Assembly (NCBI GenBank): GCA_965637545.1
Contig: OZ281499.1
Span: 9,982,001-10,046,000, forward strand
DNA length: 64,000 nucleotides
Origin: Phallusia mammillata
Taxonomy: Eukaryota
Reading direction: 5' to 3'
Shown: positions 38,010 through 64,000 of the stretch, piece after piece
Layout of the letters: each line of letters starts with the position of its first letter
Numbering within the stretch: the stretch's first letter is position 1
Notes under the pieces: model-generated
What the model saw: the letters and a program-made list of their open reading frames with translations, nothing else
Database searches by the model: none
Told to the model about the DNA's origin: nothing
Made by a program: the position numbers and the translations under genes

Positions 38010-38219
38010 CCAGATGGTAAAACATTTGGTCAAATATACTCAATGTTACATGGTGTGTGATCAAACATACATTAACCACGAATCTAAAAAAGTATCATAA
38101 TAGACGATTGTATAGCGTTTCTACTTACCCGCCGTTACTGAAGTTAGAGGCTCAACTGTGGCAAATCTTGCTGTAATGCTGACTAGCAGTAAATGCATCA
38201 GAAACATCACAAGTTTTAT
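38010..38219 (-). pseudogene. Peptide family locus D1 (start codon lost, frameshift)
   Basis: Exon1 38129..38219 is the paralog of 55930..56021 but has ATA instead of ATG and a 1-bp deletion in TSVNGG. Exon2-like 38010..38083 reads FVVNVCLITHHVTLSIFDQMFYHL. Confidence 0.6.
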
Positions 38220-38632
38220 TGCGAATCAAAAGGCTACATAAAATAATCCAAACCTTGGTAACTTTTTGCTGCAAAAAAACTAAAAAATGCAAACATTGAA
38301 CAACGCAACACACAAAATACAAACTCTGAAAATAATATTTTCAAGTTATTACACTTCACCGCCACAGTAAGTTTAACACAAAGGTCTACTTGGTGATTAA
38401 AATGGATTCACATCCTAATGGTTTTCCATTAATTTGTGGGATGGCGACGTTGAACCGTAAACAATATTAATGTCTTCTTATCTTTACTAGAAAATTTTGT
38501 TTAAAGTTGTCATAATTAAGTTACATAACTTGAAAATCTACTAACACCACGGCAAACCCACACTTAGAAGAGCAAAAATACCTATTTAAAACGGCCTGTC
38601 TAAAAAAATGCTGACTATAAGGGCTATCAGGG

Positions 38633-39088
38633 CAGAGTTGCAATCGGGCCCAAAATCTGAGCCCGAACCCGGCCCGAACCCGGCCCGAACCCGGCCCGAA
38701 CCCGGCCCGAACCCGGCCCGAACCCGGCCCGAACCCGGCCCGAACCCGACCCGAACCCGACCCGAACCCGAAAGTATAAGCCCGAAGCCCGGCCCGAACT
38801 CGAAACGTTTTTGAGAAGCCCGTTTAGGCCCGAAATTTTGATTGACAAGACAACAAACACAAGACAACAAACACAATGAACAATAGTAGACAATGGCGTA
38901 AACAATATGTTTTAGAGTAGGGTGGGCATTAGAGCAAAGCCAGAGACTTGTTATTTAGCTGAGTGATTTTTTTCAAACAAAAATGGCGGACACGGAACGT
39001 AAAGTCAGGCCCGTTTTAGCCCGTTTTCTCACAAATACCTAAGCCTGAACCCGGCCCGAACCCGAACTCGGCCCGACTTGCAACTCTG
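38633..39088. mobile_element. MITE with cagagttgcaa TIRs and an internal 11-bp minisatellite (cccgaacccgg)n
   Basis: TIRs cagagttgcaa / ttgcaactctg; perfect 8-bp TSD tatcaggg; empty site in the paralogous block at about 56860. About 9-10 tandem 11-mers at 38662-38770. Confidence 0.92.
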
Positions 39089-40258
39089 TATCAGGGTTGA
39101 AGTAAGGTATTATCATTAAAACATTCAACGAAACTAACTTTAAAACTTGTTTTCCAACCCTGTCCTCTTTATTATTTTTTTTCACGGGGTTCGAACCCAG
39201 GACACTCCAGGGGACGAATCCCGATCAAGGTTTTTTTCTATGTCTGTATATGGGTCAGGCGCGCCAGGCCATTCGGCCAAGGGTGCTAAATCAATAATTC
39301 AGTTCTTTGCGCCACCTATCGAAATTTAGCTAAGTTGGGGTCCGTCGTGAGGTTTGGTCTTATTGGTTCCACCATTGAAATCAAGAATCTGTACCGGTGA
39401 ACAGTGTTTTTTTTAAGGTGTTTTGGGGGACCGAAACGGTCCCCCAAATTTCTCCAGCGGTTTCCCAAAATTTGGACTTGCAACTACAGTGGCTATTTTT
39501 TGGTATTTAAATGAAACACTTGCGGTCTCTTAAAACTACTTAGCGGTCACCCAAACCAAACCTTAAAAAAAACCTGCCGGTGAACTTTTATAATGCTCTG
39601 TCCATTAGATAGATGAACATTTACCATGTCCATTTATAACAAAAGGCCTTAAAACGTATGTAAGGGCAGAATTAGAAAATTTTTAGACCGCCTCTTCACA
39701 ATGTGTCCAGTGGGTAGCGCACTCCATTTTATTTTCAGAAAAAGGATACTACCACTAAGTATAGTCAGCACCCGCTTCCATATCATCGTTTTTTGTCGGG
39801 AAATTGCTAAAAAAATTCCAAGTAATTGGAAGGAATTATCTGGGATTTTTTCAGTAAAGTCGAGCTTGCGTTTGAGGACATATCTGTCCGCTGCCCCGTG
39901 AGTTATTAGTAGTTGCTATGCATCTGATATTCAATGTGTAATAAAATGCATATTTGTGTGCATAGTTGGTGTAAGCTGTTGTTGTATTTGTTTGCTTTCC
40001 ATCAACGTGGACAAAGCTGACATTGAAATATAACTTACATGTTACAATATATTTTACGACTTTTTCTAAGATAAACTTTAATTCATAAAAAAAACTTTGG
40101 TAACTGACGCGACTGGTAATCATGCAAGTTTACAGGTTTTAAGCGAAGTTTTGGGTTTTTAGTTTATTGGCAATTTCAATTTTAAACATGTGATAAATAT
40201 GGTTTTCTAACTTTGCTTTTCTTTTGTTAAGTTTCAAAGTTAACATTTGAGATAAAAC

Positions 40259-41390
40259 ATGACTAAAATACTTGCGATTTTGCTGATTTCATCAGTCATG
40301 TTGATGCGTGCGTCATTGGTCTATGCCCAGTTTCCAAACTCGGATGCAGAGTAAGAAACTCAGTTTGTTTTCTTTAAACATTTTATGTAATTTGGAACAC
40401 TATATACGGATCTGTTCATAAGTTTAATGGTGAAAATAACGGCCCAAATAGACGTAAAAAGCGACATGCTTTATTGTTCAAACGTTTCGGCAAATGCTCA
40501 TGCCATCATCAGTGATATATTTTTACGTCTATTTGGGCCGTTATTTTCACCATTAAATTTTATGTAATGATACGTCAGTGAAATCCAACGTGTGTCGTAA
40601 TTGTGTACCTAGCTAGCATTTACTTAACATCAGTGGTCGGCAACCACCGGTCCGCGGCCCGGTGCTGGTCCGTGAGAAGTTTGTTACCGGGCCGTAAAAA
40701 CTTGCTCAAGGTTCACATTGATCAAAGTTGTAATAACTGTAATTAGTTTTCAGTGTTGAACATTTGTGGTTTCAAATCGGTCCGTAGTGTAAAACAGGTT
40801 GCCGACCCCTGCTTTACATTGTATAGTCCTTGTTTGTATTGGTTACGAGAAATTAAACACAGAATTGTTTTATCACCGGTCCTAACGAAGCTACAACGGT
40901 TTCCACTAAAGCAGCGGTTCCCAAACTGGGGTCCGCGGTCCTTTAGGGGTCCGTGAGGCAATTTTGGGGGGACCGCGAAGCGGTTGAAGTAATTCTATAA
41001 TCTTATTTGGCGTCAGTTTGTGCCACTAAATAAGTTTAAATCAAAGTAGAATTGAGAATCGATTGTCTCCATTGCTAAACAATGGCCTTTATTGAATGAC
41101 AACTAGCAAAAATGCAATTGTTCGCGTTTGTCCTGTTAATGTTTTTGTCCTGTTTGTGATGTCGTATGCTGTCTTTGGATGATTGTTATGCGCAATTTTG
41201 CATAACTAGCTGAAATCCTGCAATCAACTTTCGTTTTTATGAAATACACATTTAGGCTTAACGACCGCGAGCCCTCGAAATAATGGCAAAGGGACCGTTT
41301 TGAAAAAAATATGAAAAAGTTTGGGAACCACTGCACTAAAGGGTCCTCTGTTTTACATCGCTTTCCGCATAGAAAATAAATGAAATAGTG
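40259..41390 (+). CDS. Peptide family locus E1; putative exon 2 interrupted by a MITE
   Basis: Exon1 40259..40350 MTKILAILLISSVMLMRASLVYAQFPNSDA (phase 2). Exon2 from 40827 reads PCLYWLREIKHRIVLSPVLTKLQRFPLK, then MITE 40912-41333; the original frame resumes GPLFYIAFRIENK*. Confidence 0.5.
40392..40557. mobile_element. Penelope-like palindromic insertion with an intact minimal hammerhead motif (40478-40515, minus)
   Basis: 37-bp perfect inverted arms (40423-40459 / 40521-40557); 11-bp TSD ttttatgtaat; absent from the paralog at about 57870. Minus strand reads tca-CTGATGA-t-GGCA(8 nt)TGCC-GAAAC-GTT-tga. Confidence 0.75.
40631..40811. mobile_element. hAT-type MITE
   Basis: TIRs cagtggtcggcaacc / ggttgccgacccctg; TSD cttaacat/ctttacat; absent from the paralog. 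Confidence 0.85.
40912..41333. mobile_element. hAT-type MITE (family also at 60586 and 47619)
   Basis: TIRs cagcggttcccaaac / tttgggaaccactg; perfect 8-bp TSD cactaaag. Confidence 0.92.
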
Positions 41391-41466
41391 TTATCTGTAA
41401 AAACTAAAGGAGTGTGGTGATGTACTATTGTTCCTTGATATTAATGACTAAAACTAGTGGTTAAAC

Positions 41467-41961
41467 ATGGTTAAATTACTTGCAATTTTGCTGATGACAG
41501 TCCTGTTATTAAGTTTATTGTCAATTAATGCCGATGTAGCAATAGGTGGAGTGTAAGAAGCACTTACTGTCCCATTTTTAATACTTGTAACATTACTGCA
41601 AGACCTTTGGGTTCTAAATCGTTTACGTAGAGAACATTCAAGAGAATTAAAATGCCATCTTTTTTGCAGTCAAAGTCTTTTCTACGACAATGTTAAGAAC
41701 AGGTTCGAAACTTTGCAGTTGGAAGAAGAAATGGGGGAAATGTTTCATGGTTAGTATCAGCATAGGCCACAGTTTTGTTTTCCAACTTTTCAATAGTTGC
41801 TAAGTAAAGATGGATTAAAGTATAAGAGATCTCTTCACCGATAATCCAAAACACAATTACAACTTTCATGGTGTTTTGCTCAACCATGCCTCAACCACTA
41901 ATAACATAGTTTCAAACTTTTATGTTTCGATCTTTTAGATTTGAAGCGAAGCAGAGGATAA
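41467..41961 (+). CDS. Secreted peptide precursor B1 (62 aa)
   Basis: join(41467..41552,41670..41749,41939..41961): MVKLLAILLMTVLLLSLLSINADVAIGGVQSLFYDNVKNRFETLQLEEEMGEMFHDLKRSRG*. The 80-nt exon 2 has phases 2/1, as in the other members. Confidence 0.75.
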
Positions 41962-43734
41962 TTAACGCTGAAAGCAAAAACTTCTCTGGATGTTGAAAAC
42001 ACAAGGAAATAGTTTTTTTTGCCTTAGATCACTTTTGTTTTGCTGTGTGACTAAAATAAATAAATAACACGGTTAATGTTGGATCTGTCTCTGTCTACAA
42101 GTGTAAGTTTTATGGTTACTACCATTTTAAATGTTCTGTTTCAAGAGTCCAAAATCCAGCGCCTAATTTTGAAACAAAAAATTGAACATTGCACATATGT
42201 AGCTTTTCAACCGCACTCCTCTAATTTTTCCCTCACCAGCGGGGACGTGTTTTCGATAATTTTTAGAAAAAAACGTGGAAAATTATTATTAAACTATTTG
42301 CTTGTTTTGCATTAATTGCATAATGTAGCGAAGTATTTAAAGATAAATTGTTTGTTTAGAGTTTAAATTATTGGTCATGTAAGGACAGGGTCACAAGCTT
42401 GTCAAATTTTAGCGATTTACACAGCAGTACTATAGGCGGGGTTGCCATACCGTCCTTATTTCTAAGATTTGTCCTTATTTTGAAGGGCTGTGTCTTAGAA
42501 AAGTTCATTGTCCTTATTTTTGACTGTAGTCCTTATTTTGCCTTATTTTTTACAATTTCTATAGTCAAATCCCTGCAACAAGTAGAAGTGAACCTAGACC
42601 CGGCCCGATGTGAGATGCACTTAGTATTTTCTACGAACAACGAGTTGCTGTAACAGATTATTTCTGGCCAAAATATTGCAAATATTATGTCATGGCTCGT
42701 ATAAAAGCAAAGATTTGTTCAAAAACGTTTGTTTCGTTTCGCATGAAAAATTAATTTTACGGTTGTCCTTATTTTTGATTTCAAGTAGATGGCAACCCTG
42801 ACTATAGGCCTTTATTAGAAGATTAATTCTAAATCAAACTTGTTAACCAAGCATTTCCATATGGCAGGATCAGGCAAAAAGAATTTAGACCAACAAAAGG
42901 AGTTCAATGTAGTTTTGAAACCAACATGTAGAATTACTTTGATAAGCAGAACAAACACGAAATAAAACTTATTCTATAATTGAACACAAACTTTGTACTT
43001 TGCCATATCGTGCAATGCACCTTTAGCCTAAGTGTTCCTGCCATTTCAATTGGTTTTGATTTTGTTGTCTGATGGACACATTACTACTTTTTTTCAGTTT
43101 CAAATTTAGATTTATTCTAAACATGTGAAACTTTCAGGTCTAATACAAATGCTTACCATAAATATATTTGGGTTTGAAATTAAAGTTCACAATCAGAATA
43201 AAAAAGTTGTCTATGTATGAGTGCAGCATCTTTGTCGACATTTGTCTTATAACTTCAAAAGGTGTATGGGCCAGGCTTGAAGAAATATCTTAACCAGCAG
43301 CAACCGGCACGTCTATCTCACTTTGTGCAGGGTGCTGCGTCTCAAATATCTCTGTTATTCTTTTGTTGATCTGTAATGATCGATTTATGTTAACGGTCGC
43401 TAATAATTCTCAAGGTTATTACTTCGTCACTACAAATTAAAGAGCTATACTACTGTCCTTAACCTCCCAAGCTCCTGAGATTGCCAGGATAGAGTCCTGG
43501 AAACTCCACACAAATGTCTTGCACTTCAGTTTGTTAGTTTATGACAAGAGAAAGAGAGAAGAGAGATCGAAATGAACGAGTGCGGTTTTATATATATTCC
43601 GGACAAAGGCGTTAAATAATATACATGTACTCTAGCGATTGGCTCTTGCACAATTACCACATAAAGCATCGTCCAATCACAGCACAGCACAAAGCACGAA
43701 GTGAAATTCGTAACCACCATATCACAAAGTCGCA

Positions 43735-44190: not shown

Positions 44191-44300
44191 GGCTGATTCC
44201 AGTTATAAATTTCAATGTGGCGATTCCCTACTATACGAAGCTGACATCTTCAACATAGGAACGTGGCTTGTGATTCGATATGTGACGGGCTCACGGCTGA

Positions 44301-44372
44301 ACCTGGTAGCTCAGTTGGTAAAGCCCGACTCACGGCAAAGCTGTCGGCGTGGGTTCAAGACCCACCGCAGGT
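44301..44372 (+). pseudogene. tRNA-like module (pseudo-tRNA or SINE head) inside a dispersed repeat of about 280 bp
   Basis: A-box tagctcagttggta, perfect T-arm GTGGG-TTCAAGA-CCCAC, acceptor ACCTG/CAGGT; anticodon arm non-canonical. A second copy is at 55149-55221 and a decayed one at about 49320-49385. Confidence 0.6.
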
Positions 44373-45514
44373 TATTTTGTCATGTGGGAATGCCTGGTCA
44401 GCGGCTGATTCGGTATGATATGCCTTCAATGAGCCTGGTGTACTATGGTTTCTTGGTAGAGCATGCTTTCGACTAATGCAATAAATTCATAATAAATCGA
44501 AGGCCCTAACTGGTAGGCTGCGGTGTTATCTGCAATGTTTTTTTACTGCAAAAGTTCCAAATGGATTCCAACGCATTCCTGGAATTTTCTCAGTAAAATC
44601 TGCTTCATAGCAGAATAATATAACGGCGGCTATGATTTAGTACTAATATCGTGTTGTGTTAAGTATAAAAATTAAGACTTTTAAATAGCGGTACAATATG
44701 CTGCTTCTATTTTTTATAATCATTCCGCAGAAAACTCTCCCTAATAAAGGAAAAATCTTTTGTCTGTATATACATTTTTATGCCACATGCGAAAAAGTCA
44801 CAGAAATGGTCTTTACGTTTCTGTACACTTAAACAGATAAGCAAAGGTTAGTTTCCAAGCCTCTGCTGGATAAGAAAATTTCAGACATATTAACATCATT
44901 TATCAGCTCCGCCAATAAAAAATGTGTGCTGGTTGATTGTAACAGACAAATCAAGTTCAAGTTCACAATCACAATAAAAAGTTACATGGAAGAGTTGTCT
45001 TTGTATGAGTTTGCAGCAAGTTTGTTGACATTTGTTTTATAATTTCAAGGTTGTCTAGGCCAGCCTTGAAGAAATCTCCTAACATACCGGATCCACTGTG
45101 TAGGTTGCTGCGTCTCAAAACTCCCTGTTGACCTGTTGTAAATCAATGATCCTTTTGACAACACCCACATTTACGCGTTGTAGCATAAACCACCATTTCA
45201 TTCGTGGTATAATTCGCTTGGTACATTTCTTAACTGTTATTGTTTCGCCTGTTGGGTATTAACTTCCGCGAGCCTATGGGTTATTTGTTGGAAAGTAGAT
45301 CCTATTTCTGATAAGTTTTAGTGTTTGCTGCCCTGGTCGCATAAACAAAGGCACAATTATGATAACTGGGCCATACGGTTGGCAGTCAGTATTTGAGTAT
45401 AGGTTAAGTTAAGCCATCACTTCGTTCAGTAAAGCATGGTATGAAGTATTGGAACAGTAAAGCTGTAGAACAAAATAAAATGAAATTCTTGCATGTTTGG
45501 GTTAGATAAAACTC

Positions 45515-45521
45515 TATAAAA
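45515..45521 (+). promoter_or_regulatory. Candidate TATA box of peptide gene A1
   Basis: TATAAAA 140 bp upstream of the ATG, conserved before A3 (59389-59395) and changed to AATAAAA before A2 (about 50382). Confidence 0.4.
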
Positions 45522-45654
45522 CAGAAGCAAGTACTATCGAGTGTGTTTTAATGTAAAATAAGAACAATGTTTAAACAATGGGGACATAGGCGAACATAGG
45601 ATACTGTCACAATGCAACAACTTTTTGACATTGCTTGCAGAAATAAACAATAAT

Positions 45655-46074
45655 ATGAATAAACTTGTTGCATTGTTGTTGCTGTCAGCGTTGCTGGTCA
45701 ATGTTACATCTGGTAAAAGATTAGTCCATCGATATGGTTTTGCAACCAGCATCAATGGCGGGTAAGACGTAAAGTTATCTGATTCGTTTAGTTGCATATT
45801 AAATATGTTCACTTTTTAGTGTCTCAGTTGCGTACGACTCCCGAAACAGGTTTGAAACAACTGCCTTGGAGCATGCCCTGGAAAATATGTTCGATGCTGG
45901 TATGAAAAAAAAAATAATTCTAAAACTATATTTTTCAGTTAAATTGTTCCATGACCTATATGTGCCTGTGTGAAATACGGAAACTGTTTGTATTCATTAC
46001 CTTGAATACAAATGTACATAAGGCTACAATTAACCAATTATTTTTGTTTTTCAGAACTACATGAAAGAGTCTAA
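45655..46074 (+). CDS. Secreted peptide precursor A1 (68 aa)
   Basis: join(45655..45761,45820..45899,46055..46074): MNKLVALLLLSALLVNVTSGKRLVHRYGFATSINGGVSVAYDSRNRFETTALEHALENMFDAELHERV*. Splice sites and frame are conserved in three copies. Confidence 0.85.
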
Positions 46075-46424
46075 GAATAAAAAGTTGACCTCAGTGTTTG
46101 TTTTAAAGAAATAAAAAAATTGCTATTATTTCACACTGTTTGAATGACAGTAATAAACAGACAAACAGAACAGTTTTGTGTGATTGTTTTGTTGCTTACT
46201 TTGCTTCAAAAGTATCATATTAGATCAAAATGGAACAAAAATCTAATACAGACAAATATAGCTCGTTTGAGGTATAGGCTATACTGACATGTGGACTGTT
46301 GATTATCAGTTGAGTTTATTTCGCTTGGTAATAGACAACATAGCGACATATTGATATTGGTTTAGCAGATATATTTTTATGCCCGTTGGTTACAAAATGT
46401 ATATTTACTACAGTGGCCCTAGTG

Positions 46425-46641
46425 CAGTGGTTCTTAACCTTTTTTCCTTGCTGCACCCCTTTCAAATCACCAACCAATTTTCGCACCCCCTTGCAAATCA
46501 CTAACCAATTTTCGCTCCCCCTTCTGTAATTGCTTAAATAGAATAGACCTAACCAACCTTAATGATTCAGCATCCCCGCACCCCCTAGGAACAGTTCTCG
46601 CACCCCTTGGGGGTGCGTGCACCCCTGGTTAAGAACCCCTG
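46425..46641. mobile_element. hAT-type MITE with internal caccccc repeats
   Basis: TIRs cagtggttcttaacc / ggttaagaacccctg; perfect TSD ccctagtg; absent from the paralog at about 51830. Confidence 0.9.
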
Positions 46642-47618
46642 CCCTAGTGGGTATTGAAATAGCATATATGCAGACTTTTTTTTAATGTAGCCTACTTCAT
46701 AATGCCACTAACGCAACATCAACAAAAAAGCCTTGATAATTATTATTTACTATACTTTTTCTATAGATTAATCAAACATTAGCTTTTCGATGGTAGCCTA
46801 CAGCAGCAAATTGGGAAGTCAGTTTTAAGAAATGTACACCTTGACTCTGTCACGTCAAAATCTTTAAATACATGTTGGAATAATTTGTGCTATAAGTTTT
46901 TTTTTTCGTTTCAACTTCAAGTCTAAACCCAAAACCCGATTTTTTCGGCGGATTTCAAATAAGGTTGAAATATTTGAACAAACAAATGTTGCGTTGGACT
47001 CATTTCTTGTCGGTAAATGGAGTCTTTAGAACCAAAAATTTTAACTAAGAATTGACTGACTTAAACTAGGTTGATAAGAATTACAGCTTGAACTTTTATA
47101 GGCTTTAAAATCAGCTTAAAACAACATTTAACCTTAACTTTCGAATACATTTTGAACTGACGTAATTCAGTTGGTAGTACTTCAAGAAATGAACTACACC
47201 TTAAGTATGTAGAAATACTTTTCACAGGATATGTCCTTCTAAAAGTGGGCATGTTAATGTAAAACGATCACCAAGTCGAACGTTTTCAGTATTTGATATG
47301 ATAGAGAATACAGGCATCGACGAAATAAACATCTCGATTGTTACAACTTCGTTTAAGCCGATTTTAAGGCAGAAGCATTTACTGCTTTATTTTTCCTAAT
47401 GTTCATATAATTGGTTTGTTTAATTCTATCTTAACCTAAATAAGCGACAATAACGACTAAAAAAAACAAATTCGGCCAAATTCGACAGCCATTGCAACAA
47501 ACTTGTTTTATTATTCTTTATTGCTGTACCGATTTTGCTGTTGCATTCAAAAACACACTATGCATAACATAAACATCGGTTTCGTGTCCTTCCATAAACT
47601 AGGGAGCTTCTATCCTTT

Positions 47619-48007
47619 ATAGGGTTCCGTGAGGCAATTTTGGGGGGACAACTAGACTGTTGAAGTAATTCTATAAACTTATTTGGCGTCAGTTTGTGCC
47701 ACTAAATAAGTTTAAATCAAAGTAAAACTGAGAATCGACTGTTTTCGTTGCTAAACAATAGTCGTGAATGCATGACAACTATCAAAAATGCAATTGTTTG
47801 TACACAATTGTAATGTTTTTTGTCTTGTCGGTGATGCCACATGCTGTCTTTGGATGATTGTTATGCGCGATTTTGCATAAACAGCTAAATCCTACAATTA
47901 ACTTTCGTTTTTCTGAAATACACATTCAAGCTTACGGACCGCGAGCCCTCGAAATAATGGCAAATGGATGGTTTTGAAAAAATAATGAAAAAGTTTGAGA
48001 ACCAGTG
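47619..48007. mobile_element. Truncated copy of the 40912 MITE family, abutting the exon 3 remnant of C1
   Basis: Internal sequence and right end (aagtttgagaaccagtg) match; the left TIR is missing. Confidence 0.75.
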
Positions 48008-48046
48008 ATATAGATTATATTCTAGACTAGTGAAGTGTATACTTAC

Positions 48047-48129
48047 CACGAAGGATGTTTTTCATAGCTTCTTCAAGCTTCAAAGTTTCAAACATGTTCT
48101 TCATATTGTCCCATGCATTAATGTTTAAA
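48047..48129 (-). pseudogene. Peptide family locus C1: intact exon 2, exon 1 absent, exon 3 disrupted
   Basis: cag|T-LNINAWDNMKNMFETLKLEEAMKNILR-G|gtaagt. The exon 3 remnant at about 47608-47618 is cut by the MITE, and the block carrying exon 1 in C2/C3 is missing here. Confidence 0.7.
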
Positions 48130-49687: not shown

Positions 49688-49704
49688 TTATCCTCTGAGG
49701 TGGT
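49688..49704 (-). pseudogene. Orphan exon 3 of a C-type peptide gene
   Basis: tttttttag|ac cac ctc aga gga taa, matching exon 3 of C3; no exon 2 in the adjacent sequence. Confidence 0.5.
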
Positions 49705-50498
49705 CTAAAAAAATATTCAAACCATTAAATTAAAAAAATCTGGTTAAAATTATTACAGCGGGTGTCGCATCGAGAATTTAAGGTCTGATACAAATGCTTC
49801 CGTCAATAGATTTGGGTTTGGGACTCAAGTTCACAATCACAATAAAAAGTTACGTGGAAGAGTTGTCTCTGTATGTGTTTGCAGCATTTTGTCGACACTT
49901 GCTTTTTCTTCCAAGGGTGCAATATAGGCCAAGTTTGAAGAAATATCTTAGACAGCCGCATGCGACATGCCGGTCACACTTTGTGTAGGGTGCTGCGTCT
50001 CACAACTCCTTGTTGTAGATCAATGATTATTTGACAACACCCACATCGTAGTATAAATCATTTCATTCGTGCTATAGTTTATTTAGTATTTCGTAACTGT
50101 TATTGTTTGGCCGGTTGGGTATTAACTTCCGCAAGTATATGGGGTATTTTTTGGAAAGTAGATCCTCTTTCTGATAAGTTTTAGTGTTTGCTGCCCTGGT
50201 CGTATAAACAAAAGCACAATTATGATAACTGGGCCATACGGTTGGCAGTCAGTATTTGAGTATAGGTTAAGTCATCACTTCGTTCAGTAAGCATTGGTAC
50301 GAAGTATTGGAACAGTAAAGCTGTAGAACAAAATAAAATGAAATTTTTGGAAGTTTTGGGTTAGATGTCTAAATAATAATCAATAAAACAGAAGCAAGTA
50401 CTATCGAATGGGTTTTAATGTAAAATAAGAACAATGTTTAAAAAATGGGGACATGGGCGTACAGGATACTGTGACAATTCAACAACTTTTTGAAATTG

Positions 50499-51019: not shown

Positions 51020-51052
51020 TTTTTGAAATTGCTTGCAGAAATAAACAATAAC

Positions 51053-51486
51053 ATGAATAAACTTGTTGCATTGTTGTTGCTATCCGCGTTTCTGGTCAAT
51101 GTTGCATCTGGAAAAAGATTAGTTCATCGATATGGTCTTGCAACCAGCATCAATGGCGGGTAAGACCAAAAAGCTGAAAGTTTTCCCGAATCGTTTAGTT
51201 GCGTTTGAAAAATGTTTACTTTTTTATCTTAGTATCTCAATTGGCTACGACGCCCAAAACAGGTTCGAAGCAACTGCCTTGGAGCATGTCCTGGAAGATA
51301 TGTTCGATGCTGGTATTAAAAAAATTAAACAAATAAATCCTAAAAGTATATTTTTCAGTTACATTTTTCCTTGACCCATATGTGACTTTGTCAAATACGA
51401 GGACAATTTGTATTCTTTACCCTGGCTACAAATGCACAGTACAATTAACACGATTTTTTTTTTCAGAACTACATGAAAGAGTCTAA
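51053..51486 (+). CDS. Secreted peptide precursor A2 (68 aa)
   Basis: join(51053..51159,51233..51312,51467..51486): MNKLVALLLLSAFLVNVASGKRLVHRYGLATSINGGISIGYDAQNRFEATALEHVLEDMFDAELHERV*. Confidence 0.85.
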
Positions 51487-53052: not shown

Positions 53053-54529
53053 TTATCCTCTGAGGAGGTGATCTAAAAAAAAGATTCAAGCTATTGAATT
53101 TAAAAATGCTGCTTAAAATTAATACAGTAGGTAAGCACTTACAAACGTACAAAAATTGGTAAGCTTAATTGTCGACGAAACATTTAGATTATATTCTAGA
53201 TTTGTCAAGTATACTCACCACGAAAGTTTTTTTCCCTTGCTTCTTCAAGCTTTAAAGTATCAGACATGTTCTTCATATTGTCGTGCTTAACGTTTCCAGT
53301 GCTAAAACATATTAACATTTAACTTTACAAAACCAGCAAAAATCATCGAAATTAAGTTAAAGTTGGCCCTCTCAAAGATCGAGAAACTCCGTCTTAAGAA
53401 TAACTGTGTGAATGTTGTGAAAAAAAGCCAAGTTTAAGTAGAAACAAATTTCGTTTCATTAGAATCAAGCGATGTAATGAATATTTGTCTCTGTGTGGTT
53501 TGGAAAGCATGTCTTTTGACTAATGTTTTAGAATTATATAGAAGATCTTGATGATCGAATAACGAACCACTGCCGCCTGTCTTTACTGCAAAGCAAGATA
53601 AGTCAAGAAAATCTGATATGTTTGGCCATGACAGAGTGTAGATTCAGCAGAAAAGTTATATTTGTTAATTATTTGCTGGAGCCAAGTCAAACTGCAACTG
53701 ATAACAGCATAAAAATAATAAAGCATTATGAAAAAGGAATTCCGACCAATTTCTGGGATTATTTCAGTAACATCTGCTATGAAAATCCTAATACGGAAAC
53801 TGTTGAGACCCAACGCGGTGGAAGTGGTTAGTATTGCAATAATATAACGGTTGCTAAATATGATGTAATGTTTTGTGCAAGTATAAAAATGAAGACTATC
53901 AAACCAAAAAAATGATTTGCGTTTTTATACAATTTTTTATGCCACATGCGAAAAAAAGTCACTGAAAAAAACCTATACATCTTTGTTGCTTTAAAAAGAC
54001 AAGGAAGGGTTTTGTTTCCATCCCTGTTTTGGCCACGTCAACATCATTTACGACATGTGTTTTTTTAAGGCATTTGCAAGTTCAATTTGTACCTTTTACT
54101 GCGTGTTTCAACATATGCGTGACGCATATTCGATTTGCCGAGAAAGATTTTGCTGCTTTCTTCAAACAAAACCGTGCTAACTAATTAAATCTAATGCATA
54201 AACGTCATTTTGAACTTGTTTGTATACTTCAGTACAATAGTACGCTTTGTAAAATGTAAAGTTCCATGCATAACTTTTGTCATGAACCCAAATTACGGAC
54301 GACACAGACTGCTAAGACCGCACTTTTGAAGGAATAACCTTATTTAAAACACTAGTTCAGACACAATGTTTTGCTAATTGCAAGTATCGTAAAAGTATCT
54401 TGCACAACGTTCGATGTAAACTTCTTACCCTCCGTTGACGCTGGTGAGCTGGCCAGGTGGTCTTCCATAGATTGTTGACAAGTTCATCAACAGCATCGAC
54501 ATCAGCACAAATGCAATAAACCTGGACAT
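53053..54529 (-). CDS. Secreted peptide precursor C2 (67 aa)
   Basis: Exons 54429..54529, 53219..53301, 53053..53072: MSRFIAFVLMSMLLMNLSTIYGRPPGQLTSVNGGTGNVKHDNMKNMSDTLKLEEAREKNFRDHLLRG*. Confidence 0.8.
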
Positions 54530-55148
54530 TTTTTTGCTTTTTAAAGCTTAAGAAAAGAGTCAGCTTGTGAAATATATAAAGCTGTTACTACAAGCCCAAA
54601 CCAAACTGTTAATGAACACAGATTGTGCAATTTTAATGACTTAACTTGAATTTTACACATTAAGCCAACTTCCACTTGTCCAACCAGTTTCTTCAAAATA
54701 TATCACCATTTTTTGAATAGGCAGCAAATTAAAAAAGCAATTCAAACCGTTTGTGATTTCAACCAATATATCTTGAACTTCTACGTCCTAGAGAAAAGTC
54801 AATAAAACAGCACATGAAGACAATTATACTCTCCAATGGGTTTTTTAGGAAGTGACAAAAAGGCAATCAAAACTTCCTTCCACCTTTTAAGATGTTCAAA
54901 GGCAATTGCAGGCTAGAATTTTCTATCCTACGCCTTGCCATATGGGAATGCTTGGTGACCAGCTGATTCGGTAAAACGGTTTCATGCCGTGATCGCTAGT
55001 GCATGAACGCTTCATGGCTTATCCCAGTAACGAAATTTTGTTCATATTAACTGATTAATGGACAATGTGGCGATCCCCTACTACGAAGCTGACATCTCCA
55101 ACATAGGAACGTTGCTTGTAATTCGATATGTGACGGGCTCACGGCTGA

Positions 55149-55221
55149 ACCTGTGTAGCTCAGTTGGTAAAGCGCGACTCACGGCAAAACTCCTGGCGTG
55201 GGTTCAAGACCCACCGCAGGC
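55149..55221 (+). pseudogene. tRNA-like module, second copy
   Basis: 73 nt; 6/7 acceptor pairs, D-stem GCT/AGC, perfect T-arm, unpaired anticodon stem. Confidence 0.6.
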
Positions 55222-55857
55222 TATCTTGCCATGTGGCAATGACTGGTCACCGGCTGATTCGGTATGATGCCTTCAATGGGCCTGGCGTACTATGGTTTCT
55301 CGGTAGAGCATTTCATTTAGGCCGAAGTTTCACCAACTATAATTCGGGCTCTGTTTTAAACAAATGTAGTTCGGGCTCGGTTTTAGTCCTGTACTTTTTG
55401 GTTCCGGTTAACTTTGAGTTCAAATTTCGAAACCGCTCACAACACTGGTTACGTCACTCTACAACTCGTTCATAGAAACAATCATTTGGCAACCAGAGTT
55501 AAACAATATATATCCTTATCAAAGTTGAAATACGATAAATACAAATACATACAGTAACAGATGAGGAATGAGTGGAGCATGTGTGGAAAACAAAACATAC
55601 CGAAGAGTACAATAGGTTACATGTTTACTGAAAGCAACTTCTTGTAATTCTTTAATGTTAATCTATATGCACTTCAAAAGCCTGTTAAATTCAATTTTGA
55701 AATATTCGGAGAGGTATTATTTTGTATTTCTCATCTGACCACATTTTTCAAGAAACTTGTTTTGCAATCTTCTGCATTCCTTTCAGATCTGTTTGTTTCC
55801 GTGAAACCCAGATGGTAAAAAATTGGTCAAATATACTCAATGTTACATGGTGTTTGA

Positions 55858-56021
55858 TCAAACATTAACCATGAATCTAAAAAAGTATCATAACAGGATG
55901 ACGATTGAAAAAAAAGCGTTTCTACTCACCCGCCGTTAACTGAAGTTAGAGGCTCAACTGTGGCAAAACTTGTTGTAATGCTGACTAGCAGTAAATGCAT
56001 CAGAAACATCACCAGTTTCAT
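55858..56021 (-). CDS. Peptide family locus D2: intact exon 1, early stop in exon 2 (about 36 aa product, or a pseudogene)
   Basis: Exons 55930..56021 and 55858..55876: MKLVMFLMHLLLVSITTSFATVEPLTSVNGGFMVNV*. Exon 2 has a 4-bp deletion relative to D1. Confidence 0.55.
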
Positions 56022-57741
56022 TCCGAATCAATAGGCAACTTAAAATAATCTAAACCTTAGTAACTTTTTGTTGCAAAAAAACCTTCGTGAATAAACAACG
56101 CAAAACATAGAATACAAACATTGAAACAAAACTGATGTTTTTGATATTGATCAAGTAAGTGTATTCCAACATTTCTTGAGTTGCGCCCCATTAAGAAACT
56201 ACACTTCTGTTTGTGGCGAACTTTGCAGGAAAAATACACAATGTATAACAAAATCTTCAAAATAATGGCTGCATAAAGTGTGTCGCGGCACAATGGTTGA
56301 ATAACACCAGATCAAGCAATTTTTAAGACCGTGGGTATTAAAGCCAATTTTTGTTTTTTAATAACCTCGTTCTGAATTATCAACCTCCTGCTATACTTGA
56401 GTGTTTGGACGTTATACATATGTATGTTAAGATTTTGGCTGTTTGCTAGGTTGCACGTACACCTTAAACACCCAATTTAAGTTATAAAAACACAGTTTCA
56501 CAAAATCTTAATGCATTTTGGTTTGTTCTCAATAAACTTGTCAATGAGCATTTCTATACTAAAGCTTGTTATTACACCACAGTAAGTTTAACACAAAGGC
56601 CTACTTGGCGCGGTGATTAAAGTGGATTGACATCCTAATGGTTTTGCATTAATTTGTAGGATGGCGACGTTGAACCGTAAACAATTTCAATCTCTTTTTA
56701 CCTTTACTAGACAAGTTTGTTTAAAGTTGTCAAAAGTTATGTAACGTTTGAAAATCTACTAACACCACGGCAGACCCACATTTAGCTAAATTTCGATAAG
56801 TGGCACATAGAGCACAAATACTTTAAAGCGGCATGTCTTCAAACATGCTCACGGTAAGGGCTTTTAGGTTTGAGGTAAGGTATTATCATTAAAATTTAAA
56901 CGAAACTAACTTTAAAACTTGCTTTCCAACCCTGCTCTCTTTAAAGTTGCTAAATTAATAATTTAACTCTTTACGCCACCTAGGTATGGTGAGGTATGGT
57001 GTTAATGGCTCTACCATTGAAATCAAAAATCTGTATCGGTGCACTTTTATTATTGCAACTGTTGAAATGCTTTGTCCATTAGATAGAATTAACATTTCCC
57101 TTTGTCCATTAGAACAAAATGCCTTAAAATATTTGTAAGGGCAGACTTAGAACTTTGTAGAACGCCTTCTCACAATGTGCCTAGTAGGTAGCGCACTCTT
57201 TTTGCCTAGTAGGAAGCGCACATTTTATTTTCAGAAAAAAGGATACTATAGCAGTAAGTCTAGTCTGCTCCCGTTTCCACATCATCGTTTTTTGTGTGGA
57301 AATTGCTAAAAAATTTCAAGTAATTGAAAGGAATTAGCTTGCAATGTTTTTTTCAGTAAAGTCAAACTTGCGTTTAGGGACCTCTGTCTGGTGCCTCGTA
57401 GGTTGCTATTTATTCGTAGTTGCTATTTATCTGATATTGAACGTGTAATAAAATGCACATTTGTGTCCTAAGTTGGTGTTAGCTGTTGTTGCATATATTT
57501 GCTTTCCAACAGCGTGGACAAAGCTGGCGTTTAAATATACATGTTACGATTTATTATGACACAAACTTTGATTCATAACAAAAAATAAATTTTGGTAACT
57601 GATCTGGCTGACAATAAGCCTAAAAGCTTTAGACAAAGTTTTAGATTTTTATTGGCAATTAGAAATCTAAACCTGTGATGGATATGGTTTCCTAACTTTG
57701 CTATTCTTTGTTAAGTTGCAAAGCTGACCTTAAGATAAGAC

Positions 57742-58080
57742 ATGGCTAAATTACTTGCGATTTTGCTGATATCATCAGTCATGTTGATGCGTGTGTCATC
57801 AGTCTGTGCCCAGTTTTTAAGTTTGGAAACCAATGATGCAGAGTAAGAAACATAATTTGTTTTCCTTAACTATTTTATGTGATGGTCAAATACGTTTTGT
57901 GGAAATCCAATGGGTATCTTAATTATGTACCGAACCAACATTTACTTTACGTTTTATAGTGCTTGTTCATATTGGTCACGAAAAATTATAATTGTTTTGT
58001 TACCGGTGTTAACGAAGCTGCAACAGTTTCCGCTAAAGGCTCATCTGTTGTATTTGGCTTTCCGCATAGAGAATAAATGA
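57742..58080 (+). CDS. Peptide family locus E2 (73 aa, 2 exons)
   Basis: join(57742..57842,57960..58080): MAKLLAILLISSVMLMRVSSVCAQFLSLETNDADACSYWSRKIIIVLLPVLTKLQQFPLKAHLLYLAFRIENK*. The frame is shared with E1 across a 6-bp indel. Confidence 0.55.
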
Positions 58081-58171
58081 AACAGTGTTATCTGAAAAAA
58101 ACTAGGAGTGTGGTGTCCCAATTAATGTACTATTGTTCCTTAAGTTTAGTGACTCAAACTTGTGGTTAAAC

Positions 58172-58680
58172 ATGGTTAAATTACTTGCGATTTTGTTGAT
58201 ATCATGAGTCCTGTTATTAAATTTATCGTCTATTAAGCCGATGTAGCAATATAGGTTTGCACAGCAACAATGGAGGGTAAAAAGTACTTACTTTTGCATT
58301 TGTAGAACTTTTAACATTACTGCAAGACCTTTGGGCCCTAAATTGTTGACGTAGAAAACATTTAAGAGAATTAAAATGCCATCTTTTTTGCAGTCAAAGT
58401 CTTTTCTACGACAATGTTAAGAACAGGTTAGAAACTTTGCAGTTGGAAGAAGAAATGGGGAAAATGCTTAATGGTTAGTATCAGCATAGGCCACAGTTTT
58501 GTTTTGCAACGTTTTATTAGTTGCTAAGTAAAGATAGAATAAAGTATAAGAGCTGTTCTTATCAAAAATCCAAAACACAATTGCATCTTTTATGGTTGTT
58601 TGCTCAACCATACCCACTTATAACTTGGTTTTAACGTTTTATGTTTCGATCTTTTAGATTTGAAGCGAAGCAGAGGATAA
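58172..58680 (+). pseudogene. Peptide family locus B2, premature stop at codon 12
   Basis: MVKLLAILLIS* (TGA at 58205-58207). Exon 1 still ends ...LHSNNGG|gt; exon 2 (QSLFYDNVKNRLETLQLEEEMGKMLN) and exon 3 (DLKRSRG*) are intact. Confidence 0.75.
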
Positions 58681-59526
58681 TTAACGATGCAAACAAAAGC
58701 TGCCTGGATGTTGAAAGAGCAAGGAAATATTTTTTGTCTTTGGTGGCTTTTGTTTTGCTGTGTGACTGAAATATAAATAATAAATCAAAATTAAATAAAT
58801 AACACGGTTAAAGTTTACAATCACAATAAAAAGTTACATGGAATATAATTGTCTCTGTATGTGTTTGCAGCATTTTGTCGACACTTGCTTTATAATTCCA
58901 AGGGTGTATAGGCCAAGTTTGAAGAAATATCTTAGACAGCCGCATTCGACATGCCGGTCACACTTTGTTAAGGGTGCTGCGTCTCACAACTCCTTGTTTG
59001 TAGATCAATGATTATATAACAACACCCACATCGTAGCACTAACCATTTCATTCGTGCTATAGTTTATTTAGTATTTCGTAACTGTTATTGTTTGGCCGGT
59101 TGTGTATTAACTTCCGCAAGTATATGGGGTATTTGTTGGAAAGTAGATCCTCTTTCTGATAAGTTTTAGTGTTTGCTGCCCTGGTCGTATAAACAAAAGC
59201 ACAATTATGATAACTGGGCCATACGGTTGGCAGTCAGTATTTGAGTATAGGTTAAGCCACCACGTTGTTGAGCATTGGTATGAAGTATTGGAAAAAAGCA
59301 TTGGTATGAAGTATTGGAATAGTAAAGCTGTAGAACAAAATAAAATGAAATTTTTGGAAGTTTTGGGTTAGATGTCTAAATAAAACTCTATAAAACAGAA
59401 GCAAGTACTATCGAATGGGTTTTAATGTAAAATAAGAACAATGTTTAAAAAATGGGGACATGGGCGTACAGGATACTGTGACAATACAACAACTTTTTGA
59501 AATTGCTTGCAGAAATAAACAATAAC

Positions 59527-59941
59527 ATGAATAAACTTGTTGCATTGTTGTTGCTATCCGCGTTTCTGGTCAATGTTGCATCTGGTAAAAGATTAGTTAA
59601 TCGATATGGTCTTGCAACCAGCATCAATGGCGGGTAAGACTGAAAGTTATCTGATTCGTTTAGTTGCATATTAAAAATGTTCACTTTTTAGTGTCTCAAT
59701 TGGCTACGACGCGCGAAACAGGTTTGAAACAACTGCCTTGGAGCATGCCCTGGAAGATATGTTTGATGCTGGTATGAAAAAAATTAAACAAAAAAATCGT
59801 AAAACTATAGTTTTCAGTTAAATTTTTCCGTGACCCATATGTGCATGTGTCAAATACGAGGACAAAATTATTTACCCTGGCTACAAATGTACAGTACAAT
59901 TAACACGCTTTTTGTTTTCAGAACTACATGAAAGAGTCTAA
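59527..59941 (+). CDS. Secreted peptide precursor A3 (68 aa)
   Basis: join(59527..59633,59692..59771,59922..59941): MNKLVALLLLSAFLVNVASGKRLVNRYGLATSINGGVSIGYDARNRFETTALEHALEDMFDAELHERV*. Confidence 0.85.
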
Positions 59942-60142
59942 GATTGGAAAGATGACAACATCAGTGTTTGTTTGAAAGAAATAATAAGTTTGCTATTATT
60001 TCGCACTCTTATAATGATAGTAATAAATAGACAAACAAAACGGTTTTGTGGGATTGCTTTGTTGTATAGTTTAGAAGTATTATTAAATCAAAATGTTACA
60101 CAAATCTAACATAGAGAATTGTAGCTCATTTTAAGTCTAGAC

Positions 60143-60490
60143 CAGTGGTTCTCAACCAGGACCCATGGCCCCCCAGGGGGGCCACAAACTGTGTTCCGGG
60201 GGGCCACGGGTGTAGAATCACCAGAAACACCCACTGAAATCCATTTCCTTTTTAACTTTATTCCTTAATTTAATCGACTATTTCACGTACTATTTGTCTA
60301 TATTGAGTTTTTTTACGATTACGGATTATTGATTATTCTATTCGACCTGTTTAAAGTCGAAATTAGTACCGAATTCCAACATGAGATTGCCATTTACATT
60401 TTTTAAGGGGACCACAGGTCCTACAGCCTTACTTGAAGGGGGCAATGAGGTCAAAGAGTTAGTTTTAGGGAGCCACGGTCAACGAAAGGT
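60143..60490. mobile_element. hAT-type MITE (6635 family), right TIR truncated
   Basis: Starts cagtggttctcaacc; aligns along its length with 6635-6988. Confidence 0.8.
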
Positions 60491-60585
60491 TAGACTTTAC
60501 TGACACCCTTCGACCCTTAAATATCAGTTGAGTTTATTTTGCTTAGTGATAGACAACATAGCGACACATTGTCATTGTTTTAGTA

Positions 60586-61011
60586 CAGCGGTTCCCAAAC
60601 TGGGGTCCGCGGTCCTTTAGGGGTCCGTGAGGCAATTTTTGGGGGACCGCGAAGCGGTTGAAGTAATTCTATAATCTTATTTGGCGTCAGTTTGTGCCAC
60701 TAAATAAGTTTAAATCAAAGTAGAATTGAGAATCGACTGTCTCCATTGCTAAACAATGGCCTTTATTGAATGACAACTATCAAAAATGCAATTGTTCGCG
60801 CACAATCGTAATGTTTTTGTCCTGTTTGTGATGTCATATGCTGTCTTTGGATGATTGTTATGCGCAATTTTGCATAACTAGCTAAAATCCTGCAATCAAC
60901 TTTCGTTTTTATGAAATACACATTTAGGCTTAACGACCGCGAGCCTTCGAAATAATGGCAAAGGGACCGTTTTGAAAAAAATATGAAAAAAGTTTTTTTT
61001 GGGAACCACTG
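60586..61011. mobile_element. hAT-type MITE, nearly identical to 40912-41333
   Basis: Same TIRs; perfect TSD ttttagta. Confidence 0.92.
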
Positions 61012-62196
61012 TTTTAGTAGGATATATTTAAAATGCCCGTAGGTCACAAAATGTTTATTTACTAGTGGGTATTGAAATAGCATGTATGCAGACTTTCATG
61101 CTTCACAGAATAAGCTTACTTCATATATGAAGTGCCACCAACGCAACATCAACAAAAAACTTTGATAACCTATTTGCCCTGTATTTTTCCATGAATTATT
61201 TCAACGTCAGCTTTTCAATGGTGCGGCAACAAGTTGGGAAGTTAGTTTGGAAAACATTTACACCCTGACTCTGCCACGTCAATATGTTTAATAATGTTTA
61301 AATAATTTATGCTTTAAGTTGTTTAAATAATTCCGTTTCAACTTCAAGTACTAACCGAGAACCCGAATTTTATCGGCGGATTCCATACGGTTAAGAGGGT
61401 TAACACGCACAACAAGTCCAAGTCTAGTCTTTCAAGAAAGATATTTGGCTTTGGACTCGTGTTTGATTGGGAAAGCGAGACTTTTCAAGAATTGACTGAC
61501 TTAAACTCGGTTATTAAGTATTACAGCTTCAACATTTGTAAGCATAAAAATCATGTTAAAACAATACTTAATCACCTTGATTTTCGAGCAAATTTCGAAC
61601 TGTCGTAATGCAGGCGGTAATATTCAAGAAATGTGATACACCTTAAGTTTTAGTAAGCACACATACTTTTCACACGCTTTGTTTCTCTAATAGTAGGCAT
61701 GTTAATGTCCACGATCACAATCAAACTTTTTCAGTAATTGATGATAAAAAATACAGACATCGACGAAATATACATCACGATTGTTACAACTTCGTCTAAG
61801 CTGATTTTAAGTCATAAGCATTTGATTCTTTCTTTTTCCCTTAAGTTTAGCTCCTTTGAATAACAGTATAGTGCCGTCCCTAGCACAAGCCCACGTACCC
61901 GACCCGACTGTCAAACGTTGCTGAAATGTCTATAAAATGCACTATAAAAGTCGTTTTTTTATTACTCAGCAGGTTTTTGGCGAAACATAATATAATTGAA
62001 ATATATTATTGGTTTGTTTTATTCCATCTGAACCTAATAAGCGACTATACCGACCAAGAAAACTAATTCGGCGAAATGTAACTGCAACAAACTTGCTTTA
62101 TTACTCTTTTATTTGCTGTACCTGCGGTTGCATACCAAAACACACTATGCATAACATAAACAACGATTTCGTTTTCTTCAACAAACTAGGGAGCTT

Positions 62197-63840
62197 TTAT
62201 CCTCTGAGGTGATCTAAAACAAGATTCAAACCATTAAATTGAAAAATGCTGATTAAAATTATTACAGTGCGCAAGCATGTACAAACGTACAAAAATTGCT
62301 GAGCTTAATTGTAAAAAAATTGTAGATTATATTTTAGATTTGTCAAGTGTACTTACCACGAAGGATATTTTCCATTGCTTCTTCAAGCTTCCAAGTTTCA
62401 AACATGTTCTTCATATTATCCCATGGAATTTTTACACTGCAAACACATATTAGCATTCAACTTTTTAAAACCAGCAAAAATCACCGAAATTAAGTCAAAG
62501 TTGGTCCACTCAAACATCGAGAAACCCAGTGTTAGGATAACTGTGTGAATGTTGTGAAAAAAGGAAAAAAAAAAAATTTCGTTTCATTAGAATAAAAGGA
62601 TGTAAAGAATATTTGTCTCTGTATGATTTGGAAATCATGTTTTTTTGAATAATGTTTTATAATTATAAATATCAAAGATGTTGAAGAAAACCCGATAAGT
62701 TTGGCCACAACAGAGTTGTGATTCGGCTGATAAGTTATATTTGTTAATTATTTGCTGGAGCCAAGTCAAACTGCAACTGATAACAGCATAAAAAATAACA
62801 AAGAATTATTAAACAGGAATTCCGACTAATTTCTGGGATTATTTCAGTAACATCTGCTTTGAAAATCCTGATACGGAAACTGTTGAGACCAAACGTGGTG
62901 GAAGTGGTTAGTATTGCAAAAAAAATGGCTGCTGAATATGATTTAATGTTTGGTATAAGTATAAAAATATAAAAAACCAAATATAGAAAAAATGATTTGC
63001 TTTTCAAACATTTTGTTAACCCTCTACTGGATCAGAAAATGCTAGAAGACTTGTTTACATTATTTACCGACGTCCTCCATCAAAAAAACAAAAATGCAAA
63101 GACAATAGAATTTGTATATTGACTATTTACTAACGTCTAAAACACAAGGACGCGACCTTATTTTAACACTTTCGTGTCGTATATTTGCAAATATATCTGC
63201 AAATTACGATTTGCCGAGGAGATCATGCTTCTTCAAGCACAACTGTGCAAATGTATTAAATGTGCATGCCAGGACCACAAAAAAATAACTCATTATAAAA
63301 CAAGTTAGACTAGTAAGTCGGGCCGGGCTTTTGGAGATTTAAGTTCGAGCCGGGTTCGGGCTTAGGTTTTGTTACACAAACTGGCTTTATTCGGATCTGA
63401 ATTTAAATTCTGTGTATTTTTTTCAGATAAAATTAGCCCACTAAGTATATAGTTGCTGGACTTCACCGAATGCCCAACAGCCCTAAAACGCCATGTTTAT
63501 TTAAGTATTCTGTCCAATGGTACGTTTTGTAGGCTGTTAAGCAGAGGCCTGTCAAACAAACTTTCGTGACTAAACGACTTCTGAACAACGATTCAGGTTG
63601 AAGCCGAGCTTCGGGCTTGTACTTTCGGATTGGGCTCAAATTTCGGGTCGGCTTACAACTTTGATTTAGACGCAACGATTTGCTACTTGCAAGTATCGTA
63701 AAAGTTTTTTTGCTTAAACGTTTGATTTAAACTACTTACCCCCCGTTGTTGCTGGTCTGGTGGAGGGGTTTTCGTCCATGGACTGGTGACAAGTTCATTA
63801 ACAGCAACGAAATCAGCACAAACGCAATACACCTGGTCAT
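62197..63840 (-). CDS. Secreted peptide precursor C3 (65 aa)
   Basis: Exons 63740..63840, 62357..62436, 62197..62213: MTRCIAFVLISLLLMNLSPVHGRKPLHQTSNNGGVKIPWDNMKNMFETWKLEEAMENILRDHLRG*. Confidence 0.82.
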
Positions 63841-64000
63841 TTTTGGCTTCTAAAATAACAAAGAGCCTGTTTTAGAAACATAAAGCTGCTACTACAAGCC
63901 ATGACTAAACTTTAATTTGCACATTAAACCAACTTCCACTTATCAATCTGGTAAAATAATTGAGCTAACTAGTTTCTTCAAAATACACCACGATTTTAAA

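Follow-up and report, generated by a model that had tools for sequence, protein, structure and literature searches.

Exons of 17–107 nt are missed by gene callers, and the locus described here raises the question of whether a family of tiny spliced genes has been hidden in this way in the ascidian Phallusia mammillata and, if so, what its products might do. The locus lies in a 64-kb stretch of contig OZ281499.1 (hereafter the window), for which an earlier note had proposed about 12 small loci of one secreted-peptide family in the cluster span of 38–64 kb. All statements on RNA runs, splicing, homology and constraint made below refer to this window and this span. Ascidians rely on innate immunity alone, salt-tolerant peptides are of applied interest, and few species have so far contributed to the known ascidian peptide families. 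On the best reading, the cluster is a real, fast-evolving and lineage-restricted family of small ascidian prepropeptide genes, the products of which are predicted to be secreted.

Cluster organization and gene models

The exon peptides were compared with the window by tblastn, and the gene models were obtained by reading the exons from the DNA and then joining them, with splice sites and phases checked. Twelve related loci and one orphan exon 3 were identified on both strands of a ∼26-kb stretch (38–64 kb), whereas the tblastn search of the whole 64-kb window returned no family exon copy outside it. Exon 1 was found in 11 copies and exon 2 in eight. The eight exon-2 matches had E-values of 1e-5 to 1e-16, which is far beyond chance for 64 kb, and the best exon-peptide E-values in the whole window reached 1e-16 to 1e-20. 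The window is AT-rich throughout (34–41% G+C). Each locus claimed in the earlier note was recovered by tblastn and direct reading, which confirms its observation in detail.

Six loci contained an intact open reading frame (ORF) distributed over three exons of 86–107, 80 or 83, and 17–23 nt. The three A-type genes are on the forward strand and encode 68 aa each: A1 (45655..46074; exons 45655–45761, 45820–45899 and 46055–46074, of 107, 80 and 20 nt), A2 (51053..51486; exons 51053–51159, 51233–51312 and 51467–51486), and A3 (59527..59941; exons 59527–59633, 59692–59771 and 59922–59941). B1, also on the forward strand (41467..41961), encodes 62 aa in exons 41467–41552, 41670–41749 and 41939–41961 (86, 80 and 23 nt). 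The two intact C-type genes are on the reverse strand. C2 (53053..54529) encodes 67 aa in exons 54429–54529, 53219–53301 and 53053–53072 (101, 83 and 20 nt), and C3 (62197..63840) encodes 65 aa in exons 63740–63840, 62357–62436 and 62197–62213 (101, 80 and 17 nt).

All six genes presented canonical GT-AG introns, with GTAAG, GTGAG, GTATG, GTATT or GTTAG at the donor and a pyrimidine-rich acceptor ending in AG. Intron 1 is in phase 2 and interrupts the second Gly codon of an S-x-N-G-G sequence, and intron 2 is in phase 1. Exon 2 encodes a [YW]D..N[RM]FET..LE motif, in which FET has drifted to SDT in C2. AATAAA or ATTAAA was found about 80–100 nt past the stop codons, and the polyadenylation signal of A1 lies within 80 nt. 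The models thus bear out each of the six three-exon genes of 62–68 aa that had been proposed, together with the S-x-N-G-G end of exon 1 and the exon-2 motif. B1 has lost 17 nt at the end of exon 1, while exon 1 of the related locus B2 retains the ancestral S-N-N-G-G end; B1 is therefore a derived copy, as had been suggested.

Self-comparison of the window showed that duplicated segments make up 36–64 kb. A ∼5-kb unit, in which an A and a C locus are convergent, is present in three copies (44955–49164, 49777–54613 and 58807–63916). A second unit, in which an E locus on the reverse strand diverges from D and B on the forward strand, is present in two (36254–42067 and 55328–58783). The cluster originated by segmental duplication.

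Transcription and splicing of A2

Between 45600 and 51599, 5–11% of the sampled words were present in RNA-type runs of the same organism. Contigs from four RNA runs of four studies, chosen by words of the A1/A2 region, were placed on 58000–63999; such contigs indicate presence, not absence. In three of the runs, from three studies (X3, X7 and X10), one contig of 251–341 nt covered the A locus, and each contig skipped 59634–59693 and 59771–59920, the second skip having GT..AG ends. The mismatches of the contigs to A3 fell at exactly the nine positions where A2 and A3 differ, and the X3 contig has a 5′ overhang that matched 50990–51019, upstream of A2. The contigs are therefore A2 mRNA. This demonstrates that A2 is transcribed and that both junctions predicted for it are spliced exactly.

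The A2 contigs, at a low depth of 3–12, contained the three exons and short untranslated regions and nothing else, which rules out that these exons are part of a larger gene. The fourth run (X1) yielded an unspliced A2 contig extending from exon 1 into intron 1 (51160–51196), which could be due to intron retention, pre-mRNA or DNA carry-over. Over 58000–63999, the four runs gave no contig for B2 and next to nothing for C3, and the own sequence of A3 was not seen. The A2 mRNA contig extends upstream to 50990 or beyond, into an element inserted at 50499–51053, and transcription of A2 may thus begin within this insertion.

A strong acceptor-like sequence, T-T-G-C-T-T-G-C-A-G, was also observed 14 nt 5′ of the ATG in A1, A2 and A3 (sites at 45619–45636, 51018–51037 and 59493–59512). 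One RNA contig begins 1–2 nt past this site and another reads through it. Spliced-leader trans-splicing is common in ascidians, and the site could be a trans-splice acceptor of this type.

Coding constraint and evolution

The exons of the A paralogues aligned without gaps and were 88–100% identical, against 76–95% identity and many indels in their introns. The ratio of nonsynonymous to synonymous substitution rates (dN/dS) over the whole A-type coding sequence was 0.39–0.57, a value derived from only 9–17 substitutions; within B, within C, and between B and C, it ranged from 0.3 to 1.2. For exon 2 in the between-subfamily comparisons involving the A type, the proportion of synonymous differences (pS) was saturated, at 0.55–0.88, and that of nonsynonymous differences (pN) was 0.39–0.53. 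By codon position, the between-subfamily differences followed the order 3 > 1 > 2 (0.52, 0.45 and 0.38).

The length changes of the exons were all multiples of three, whereas the intron indels were arbitrary. The reading frame was never disrupted among the eight exon-2 copies, which differ in length by 3 nt only. The frame and splice architecture have therefore been kept over a long divergence while the residues evolve fast; purifying selection is weak to moderate, and the constraint on exon 2 is modest. The C type shows near-neutral to fast evolution, a mode that is common among immune effectors.

The duplications and the dN/dS values agree with the earlier description of a fast-evolving, tandemly clustered family of small genes. 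The earlier note had made its claim depend on spliced reads at the predicted junctions and on purifying selection on exon 2, and the former were found for A2, while the latter is modest.

Broken, partial and orphan loci

The remaining loci are broken or partial, and B2, C1, E2 and the lone first exons D1 and D2 were found in the state in which they had first been described. In B2 (58172..58680, +), the first exon (58172–58276) is interrupted by an in-frame TGA and is also frameshifted, and both its exon 2 (58394–58473) and its exon 3 (58658–58680) are intact. C1 (48047..48129, −) consists of an intact 83-nt exon 2 alone; its exon 1 is absent, and its exon 3 has been lost to a repeat insertion at 47613–48004. 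An orphan C-type exon 3 that was absent from the earlier note is located at 49688..49704 (−). It has an intact acceptor and encodes D-H-L-R-G-stop, and the self-comparison showed it to be homologous to the C3 exon-3 region (49504–49758 matches 62022–62267).

E1 (55858..56021, −) has two exons (55930–56021 and 55858–55876) and encodes 36 aa; it presents the family signal and an S-V-N-G-G end, and the exon-2 motif is absent. E2 (38127..38219, −) is a dead copy of E1 exon 1, in which ATA replaces ATG and 1 nt has been deleted ahead of the donor.

D1 (40259..40350, +) is a lone first exon that encodes a signal and a short head and ends in a phase-2 donor; the first exon of B1 follows 1.2 kb downstream. 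A second such exon, D2 (57742..57842, +), precedes the broken first exon of B2 by 430 nt. The two copies differ by one in-frame 9-nt indel. When joined in silico, D1 and B1 exons 2–3 gave a complete in-frame ORF of 64 aa, and D2 and B2 exons 2–3 gave one of 67 aa. Given the phase-2 donor, the in-frame indel, the position 0.4–1.2 kb upstream and the in-frame ORFs in both copies, D may serve the B genes as an alternative first exon, or as a replacement first exon in the second copy. If D is spliced to B exons 2–3, D2 and B2 would represent one live gene rather than two dead loci.

Predicted products and their possible function

The first exons encode a basic residue at position 2–3, followed by a hydrophobic run of 12–15 residues and a small-x-small site (T-S-G, V-H-G, I-Y-G, I-N-A, V-Y-A or S-F-A). 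No later hydrophobic stretch was seen by eye after the signal region of the intact models. Judged in this way, the N-terminus would be a standard secretory signal. The predicted mature peptides comprise 40–48 residues and are free of Cys in all intact models, the sole Cys of C3 being situated in the signal. Between the signal and G-G lies a variable head of 6–16 residues that ends in S-x-N-G-G. The A-type head is basic, from K-R-L-V-H-R-Y onward, with K-R directly after the predicted signal cleavage site.

For A1, the earlier count of a net charge of +3 in the head and −4 in the tail was recomputed and found to be correct. For the A type as a whole, the values were +3 and −4 to −6, compared with +2/−1 in C3, +1/+1 in C2 and −1/−2 in B1, and the E1 head had a net charge of −1. 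The split into a cationic head and an anionic tail, which the earlier note had stressed, is thus a property of the A type only.

The reading that we tentatively favour, with somewhat less than even confidence, is a host-defence-type prepropeptide family working like the precursors of the linear cationic helical antimicrobial peptides (LCAMPs) of Ciona. By analogy with these, exon 1 would supply a cleavable signal followed by a short variable head with S-x-N-G-G at its end, and a conserved, mostly acidic and helix-prone tail ([YW]-D, N-[RM]-F-E-T, L-E-E) would come from exon 2 together with micro-exon 3. Signal cleavage would send a peptide of ∼40–48 residues into the secretory pathway. A cut near G-G/[YW]-D would then most likely give a variable head peptide, the effector, and an acidic propiece, as has been proposed for the Ciona precursors. 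Diversification would proceed via tandem duplication of the ∼5-kb unit, birth and death of copies and, possibly, swapped first exons (D or B) on shared exons 2–3. It is consistent with this reading that the head cannot be aligned between subfamilies while the tail motif persists, as would be expected where a hypervariable effector is attached to a conserved propiece.

Several observations weigh against it. The signal peptide call was made by eye, and expression was demonstrated for A2 only, at low depth. Cationic heads are lacking in B1 and D, as is an anionic tail in C2. In no member other than C3 did the tail have a helical hydrophobic moment above that of shuffled controls, and the idea of exon 2 as a strikingly amphipathic helix was rejected on this basis. 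The heads, of 6–16 aa, are shorter than the Ciona cationic helices of 18–35 aa and do not reach the 18 or more residues by which such a helix is defined. The pairwise, hidden Markov model (HMM) and profile–profile similarity to Ciona does not survive multiple-test correction. Because all heads are too short for a cationic amphipathic helix and the charge split is confined to the A type, the family is not filed as LCAMP.

A rather less probable explanation is that the conserved acidic helix of exons 2–3 is itself the functional secreted product, acting as an extracellular matrix, tunic, adhesive or metamorphosis peptide or as a binding partner of a metal or a cationic molecule, with the head serving as a spacer. 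The family-wide conserved residues are indeed confined to exon 2, where all eight copies share D, N, L and E without exception, and the heads vary in both length (6–16 residues) and charge (−1 to +3). Two Ciona look-alikes that are listed as predicted peptides, Ci-META4 and Ci-META6, also bear names that reportedly come from a screen for metamorphosis-regulated genes. However, exon 2 is only weakly constrained, the E-type loci keep the head and lose the tail, and among the A paralogues it is the head that shows, if anything, the stronger conservation (pN 0.03–0.06, vs 0.05–0.11 for the tail).

The small, secreted and Cys-free precursors might instead encode signalling peptides, similar to neuropeptides, hormones or pheromones, that act on a receptor; we consider this unlikely. 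In the B and C types the ORF closes with R-G-stop, which could serve as a signal for C-terminal amidation, B1 has a K-R pair ahead of its last three residues, and the A heads start with K-R after the predicted signal site. Nevertheless, the A type is without a terminal Gly, basic pairs flanking the conserved exon-2 segment are absent, and no Pfam hormone family matched at E-values up to 10. A dN/dS near 1 in C and B, together with rapid birth and death of copies, would also be unusual for ligands of a conserved physiology.

It is improbable that the loci are functionless young ORFs in a duplicated segment, with frames surviving by chance and the A2 RNA being noise, maybe driven by the inserted upstream element: constraint is weak, differences within subfamilies fall evenly on codon positions 1, 2 and 3 (0.148/0.142/0.164), the exons of C2 and C3 (78–79% identity) are no better kept than their introns (68–85%), half of the loci are broken, and the thinly covered A2 transcript begins inside or beyond the inserted repeat, but three subfamilies separated by a pS of 0.55–0.88 still keep frame, splice sites, phases and motif, with exon indels confined to multiples of three nucleotides, against many arbitrary ones in introns, and, in the A type, exons more conserved than introns at a dN/dS of 0.4–0.6.

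Searches for relatives

Among 5.8 billion proteins, none had enough words in common with the A2 peptide or with an alignment of four members. A profile of exon 2, built from references exact to the window, gave no match at E-values up to 0.001 among 1.84 billion proteins, although with 26 positions such a profile is low-powered. The Pfam search returned one sub-threshold chance match to a helix-turn-helix (HTH) model, the PDB sequences contained no relative, and the ESM Atlas feature search with exon 2 returned unnamed clusters at chance level. The family is absent from the protein sets searched. As the profile is weak and tiny spliced genes are rare in protein sets, these negative results are no proof that other tunicates lack the family. 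They accord with the earlier statement that no named family could be recognised; the strong match to a well-described family that would remove the novelty was looked for and not found.

The cluster provides a partly transcript-supported example of hidden genes, and its series of intact, drifting and broken copies would lend itself to the study of the birth and loss of short secreted peptides.

Repeats and neighbouring features

A dispersed repeat of ∼400 bp was identified at 60586–60995, with copies at 40912–41322 (96% identity) and 47613–48004 (85–87%), the latter just downstream of C1 exon 2. It represented by far the most abundant RNA in 58000–63999, with contig depths up to 333. As the contigs exit the repeat into many different flanks, it is a transcribed element resembling a short interspersed element (SINE) or a miniature inverted-repeat transposable element (MITE).

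The putative foldback elements at 50499–51053 and 40392–40557 were considered as carriers of a hammerhead ribozyme, and this was rejected because the Rfam search found none at E-values up to 1. The palindrome at 40.4 kb gave generic long-hairpin Rfam matches only, far below threshold. A tRNA-like Rfam match at 55149–55222 (+) scored 33.8 bits, just over the gathering score, and ARAGORN made no call there. The feature lies within a repeat that has a 91% identical copy at 44213–44464, and it thus probably represents a SINE of tRNA origin and not a tRNA gene. Outside the cluster, an ORF of 183 aa at 23233–23784 (−) contains a clear RING-H2 zinc finger (Pfam zf-RING_2, E 2.6e-12) and appears to be an ordinary gene.

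Comparison with Ciona LCAMPs and other systems

A genome-wide screen of Ciona for LCAMPs reported 22 precursors of 50–100 aa, including Ci-MAM-A/C/D/E, Ci-PAP-A, Ci-META4/6 and related KH models (PMC7387483). Most of them consist of a signal, a cationic helix and an anionic helix, the criteria being a cationic amphipathic α-helix of ∼18 or more residues and a C-terminal anionic proregion with a net charge of −3 to −10 (PMC7387483). The junction between the helices is W-N-[EQ] in many and Y-D-Q in one, and the acidic helices include A-E-M-E-E-V-M-Q-K-I-M-D-H (PMC7387483). Ascidian precursors are apparently cut N-terminal of an acidic residue (PMC7387483), and cleavage of the Styela clava clavanins and styelins was reported N-terminal of D or DD (as cited in PMC7387483).

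The Phallusia genes resemble these precursors in several respects. They are a multigene set of predicted prepropeptides of similar length (62–68 aa) from a phlebobranch ascidian, with a Cys-free mature part and a putative signal conserved by family, and their predicted layout follows the same order of signal, variable basic part and C-terminal anionic helix. The junction follows the same aromatic-[ND]-[QEN] pattern, here as [YW]-D-[NSA]. The helix is likewise rich in E, M and L, as illustrated by M-E-E-V-M-Q-K-I-M-D-H in Ciona and L-E-E-A-M-E-N-I-L-R-D-H in C3. The two systems differ in that a clear cationic head is found here in the A type only and that an anionic tail of −3 to −10 is reached by A1–A3 alone. 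What holds of the earlier interpretation is a real, fast-evolving family that matches no named family by sequence and has, in overall layout, the LCAMP-like order of signal, cationic part and anionic part that is known from ascidian antimicrobial peptide precursors; the charge split is limited to the A type, and the heads fall short of helix length.

Two Ciona proteins (P0001 and P0002) were retrieved, and local tests were performed against Ciona sequences. Smith–Waterman scores compared with shuffles gave best p-values of 0.003–0.02 for a few of 44 pairs, before correction. Fisher's method over ten Ciona sequences gave ∼0.002, although these sequences are not independent. The family HMM scored at most 6.3 bits against the Ciona tails, with empirical p-values of 0.007–0.6 (5 of 11 below 0.07), and hhalign returned a P-value of 0.018 with a probability of 2.5%. 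A literature search for the exon structure of Ci-MAM gave nothing usable. The resemblance to Ciona is a lead and not proof, and it could reflect common descent or a shared acidic-helix composition.

The stronger proposal is that the cluster is the Phallusia branch of an unrecognised phlebobranch superfamily to which Ci-MAM, Ci-META and the related LCAMP genes of Ciona would also belong. An acidic follower encoded by exons 2–3 would here be combined with interchangeable first exons, each bringing a signal and a different short warhead, and within one gene the exchange would occur by splicing D or B exon 1 to the same B exons 2–3. This proposal is doubtful. If the link to the Ciona LCAMPs is true, the acidic propiece and the junction motif would be the first cross-genus anchor and would provide a search handle for other tunicates.

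The clavanins and styelins of Styela clava are also small Cys-free ascidian precursors with an acidic extension, and the invariant D of [YW]-D here recalls their cleavage residue. Mature clavanins and styelins are amphipathic helices of 23–32 residues. A segment of this kind is absent from the present family, and no sequence similarity to them was found.

A broader parallel is offered by taxon-restricted clusters of secreted peptides, such as the orphan peptides of Hydra and the skin peptide loci of frogs. In these, too, a hypervariable effector is paired with a signal and a propiece that are conserved, and the clusters evolve by tandem duplication and birth-and-death and are absent from standard annotation. 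The resemblance to them is one of kind and not of relationship.

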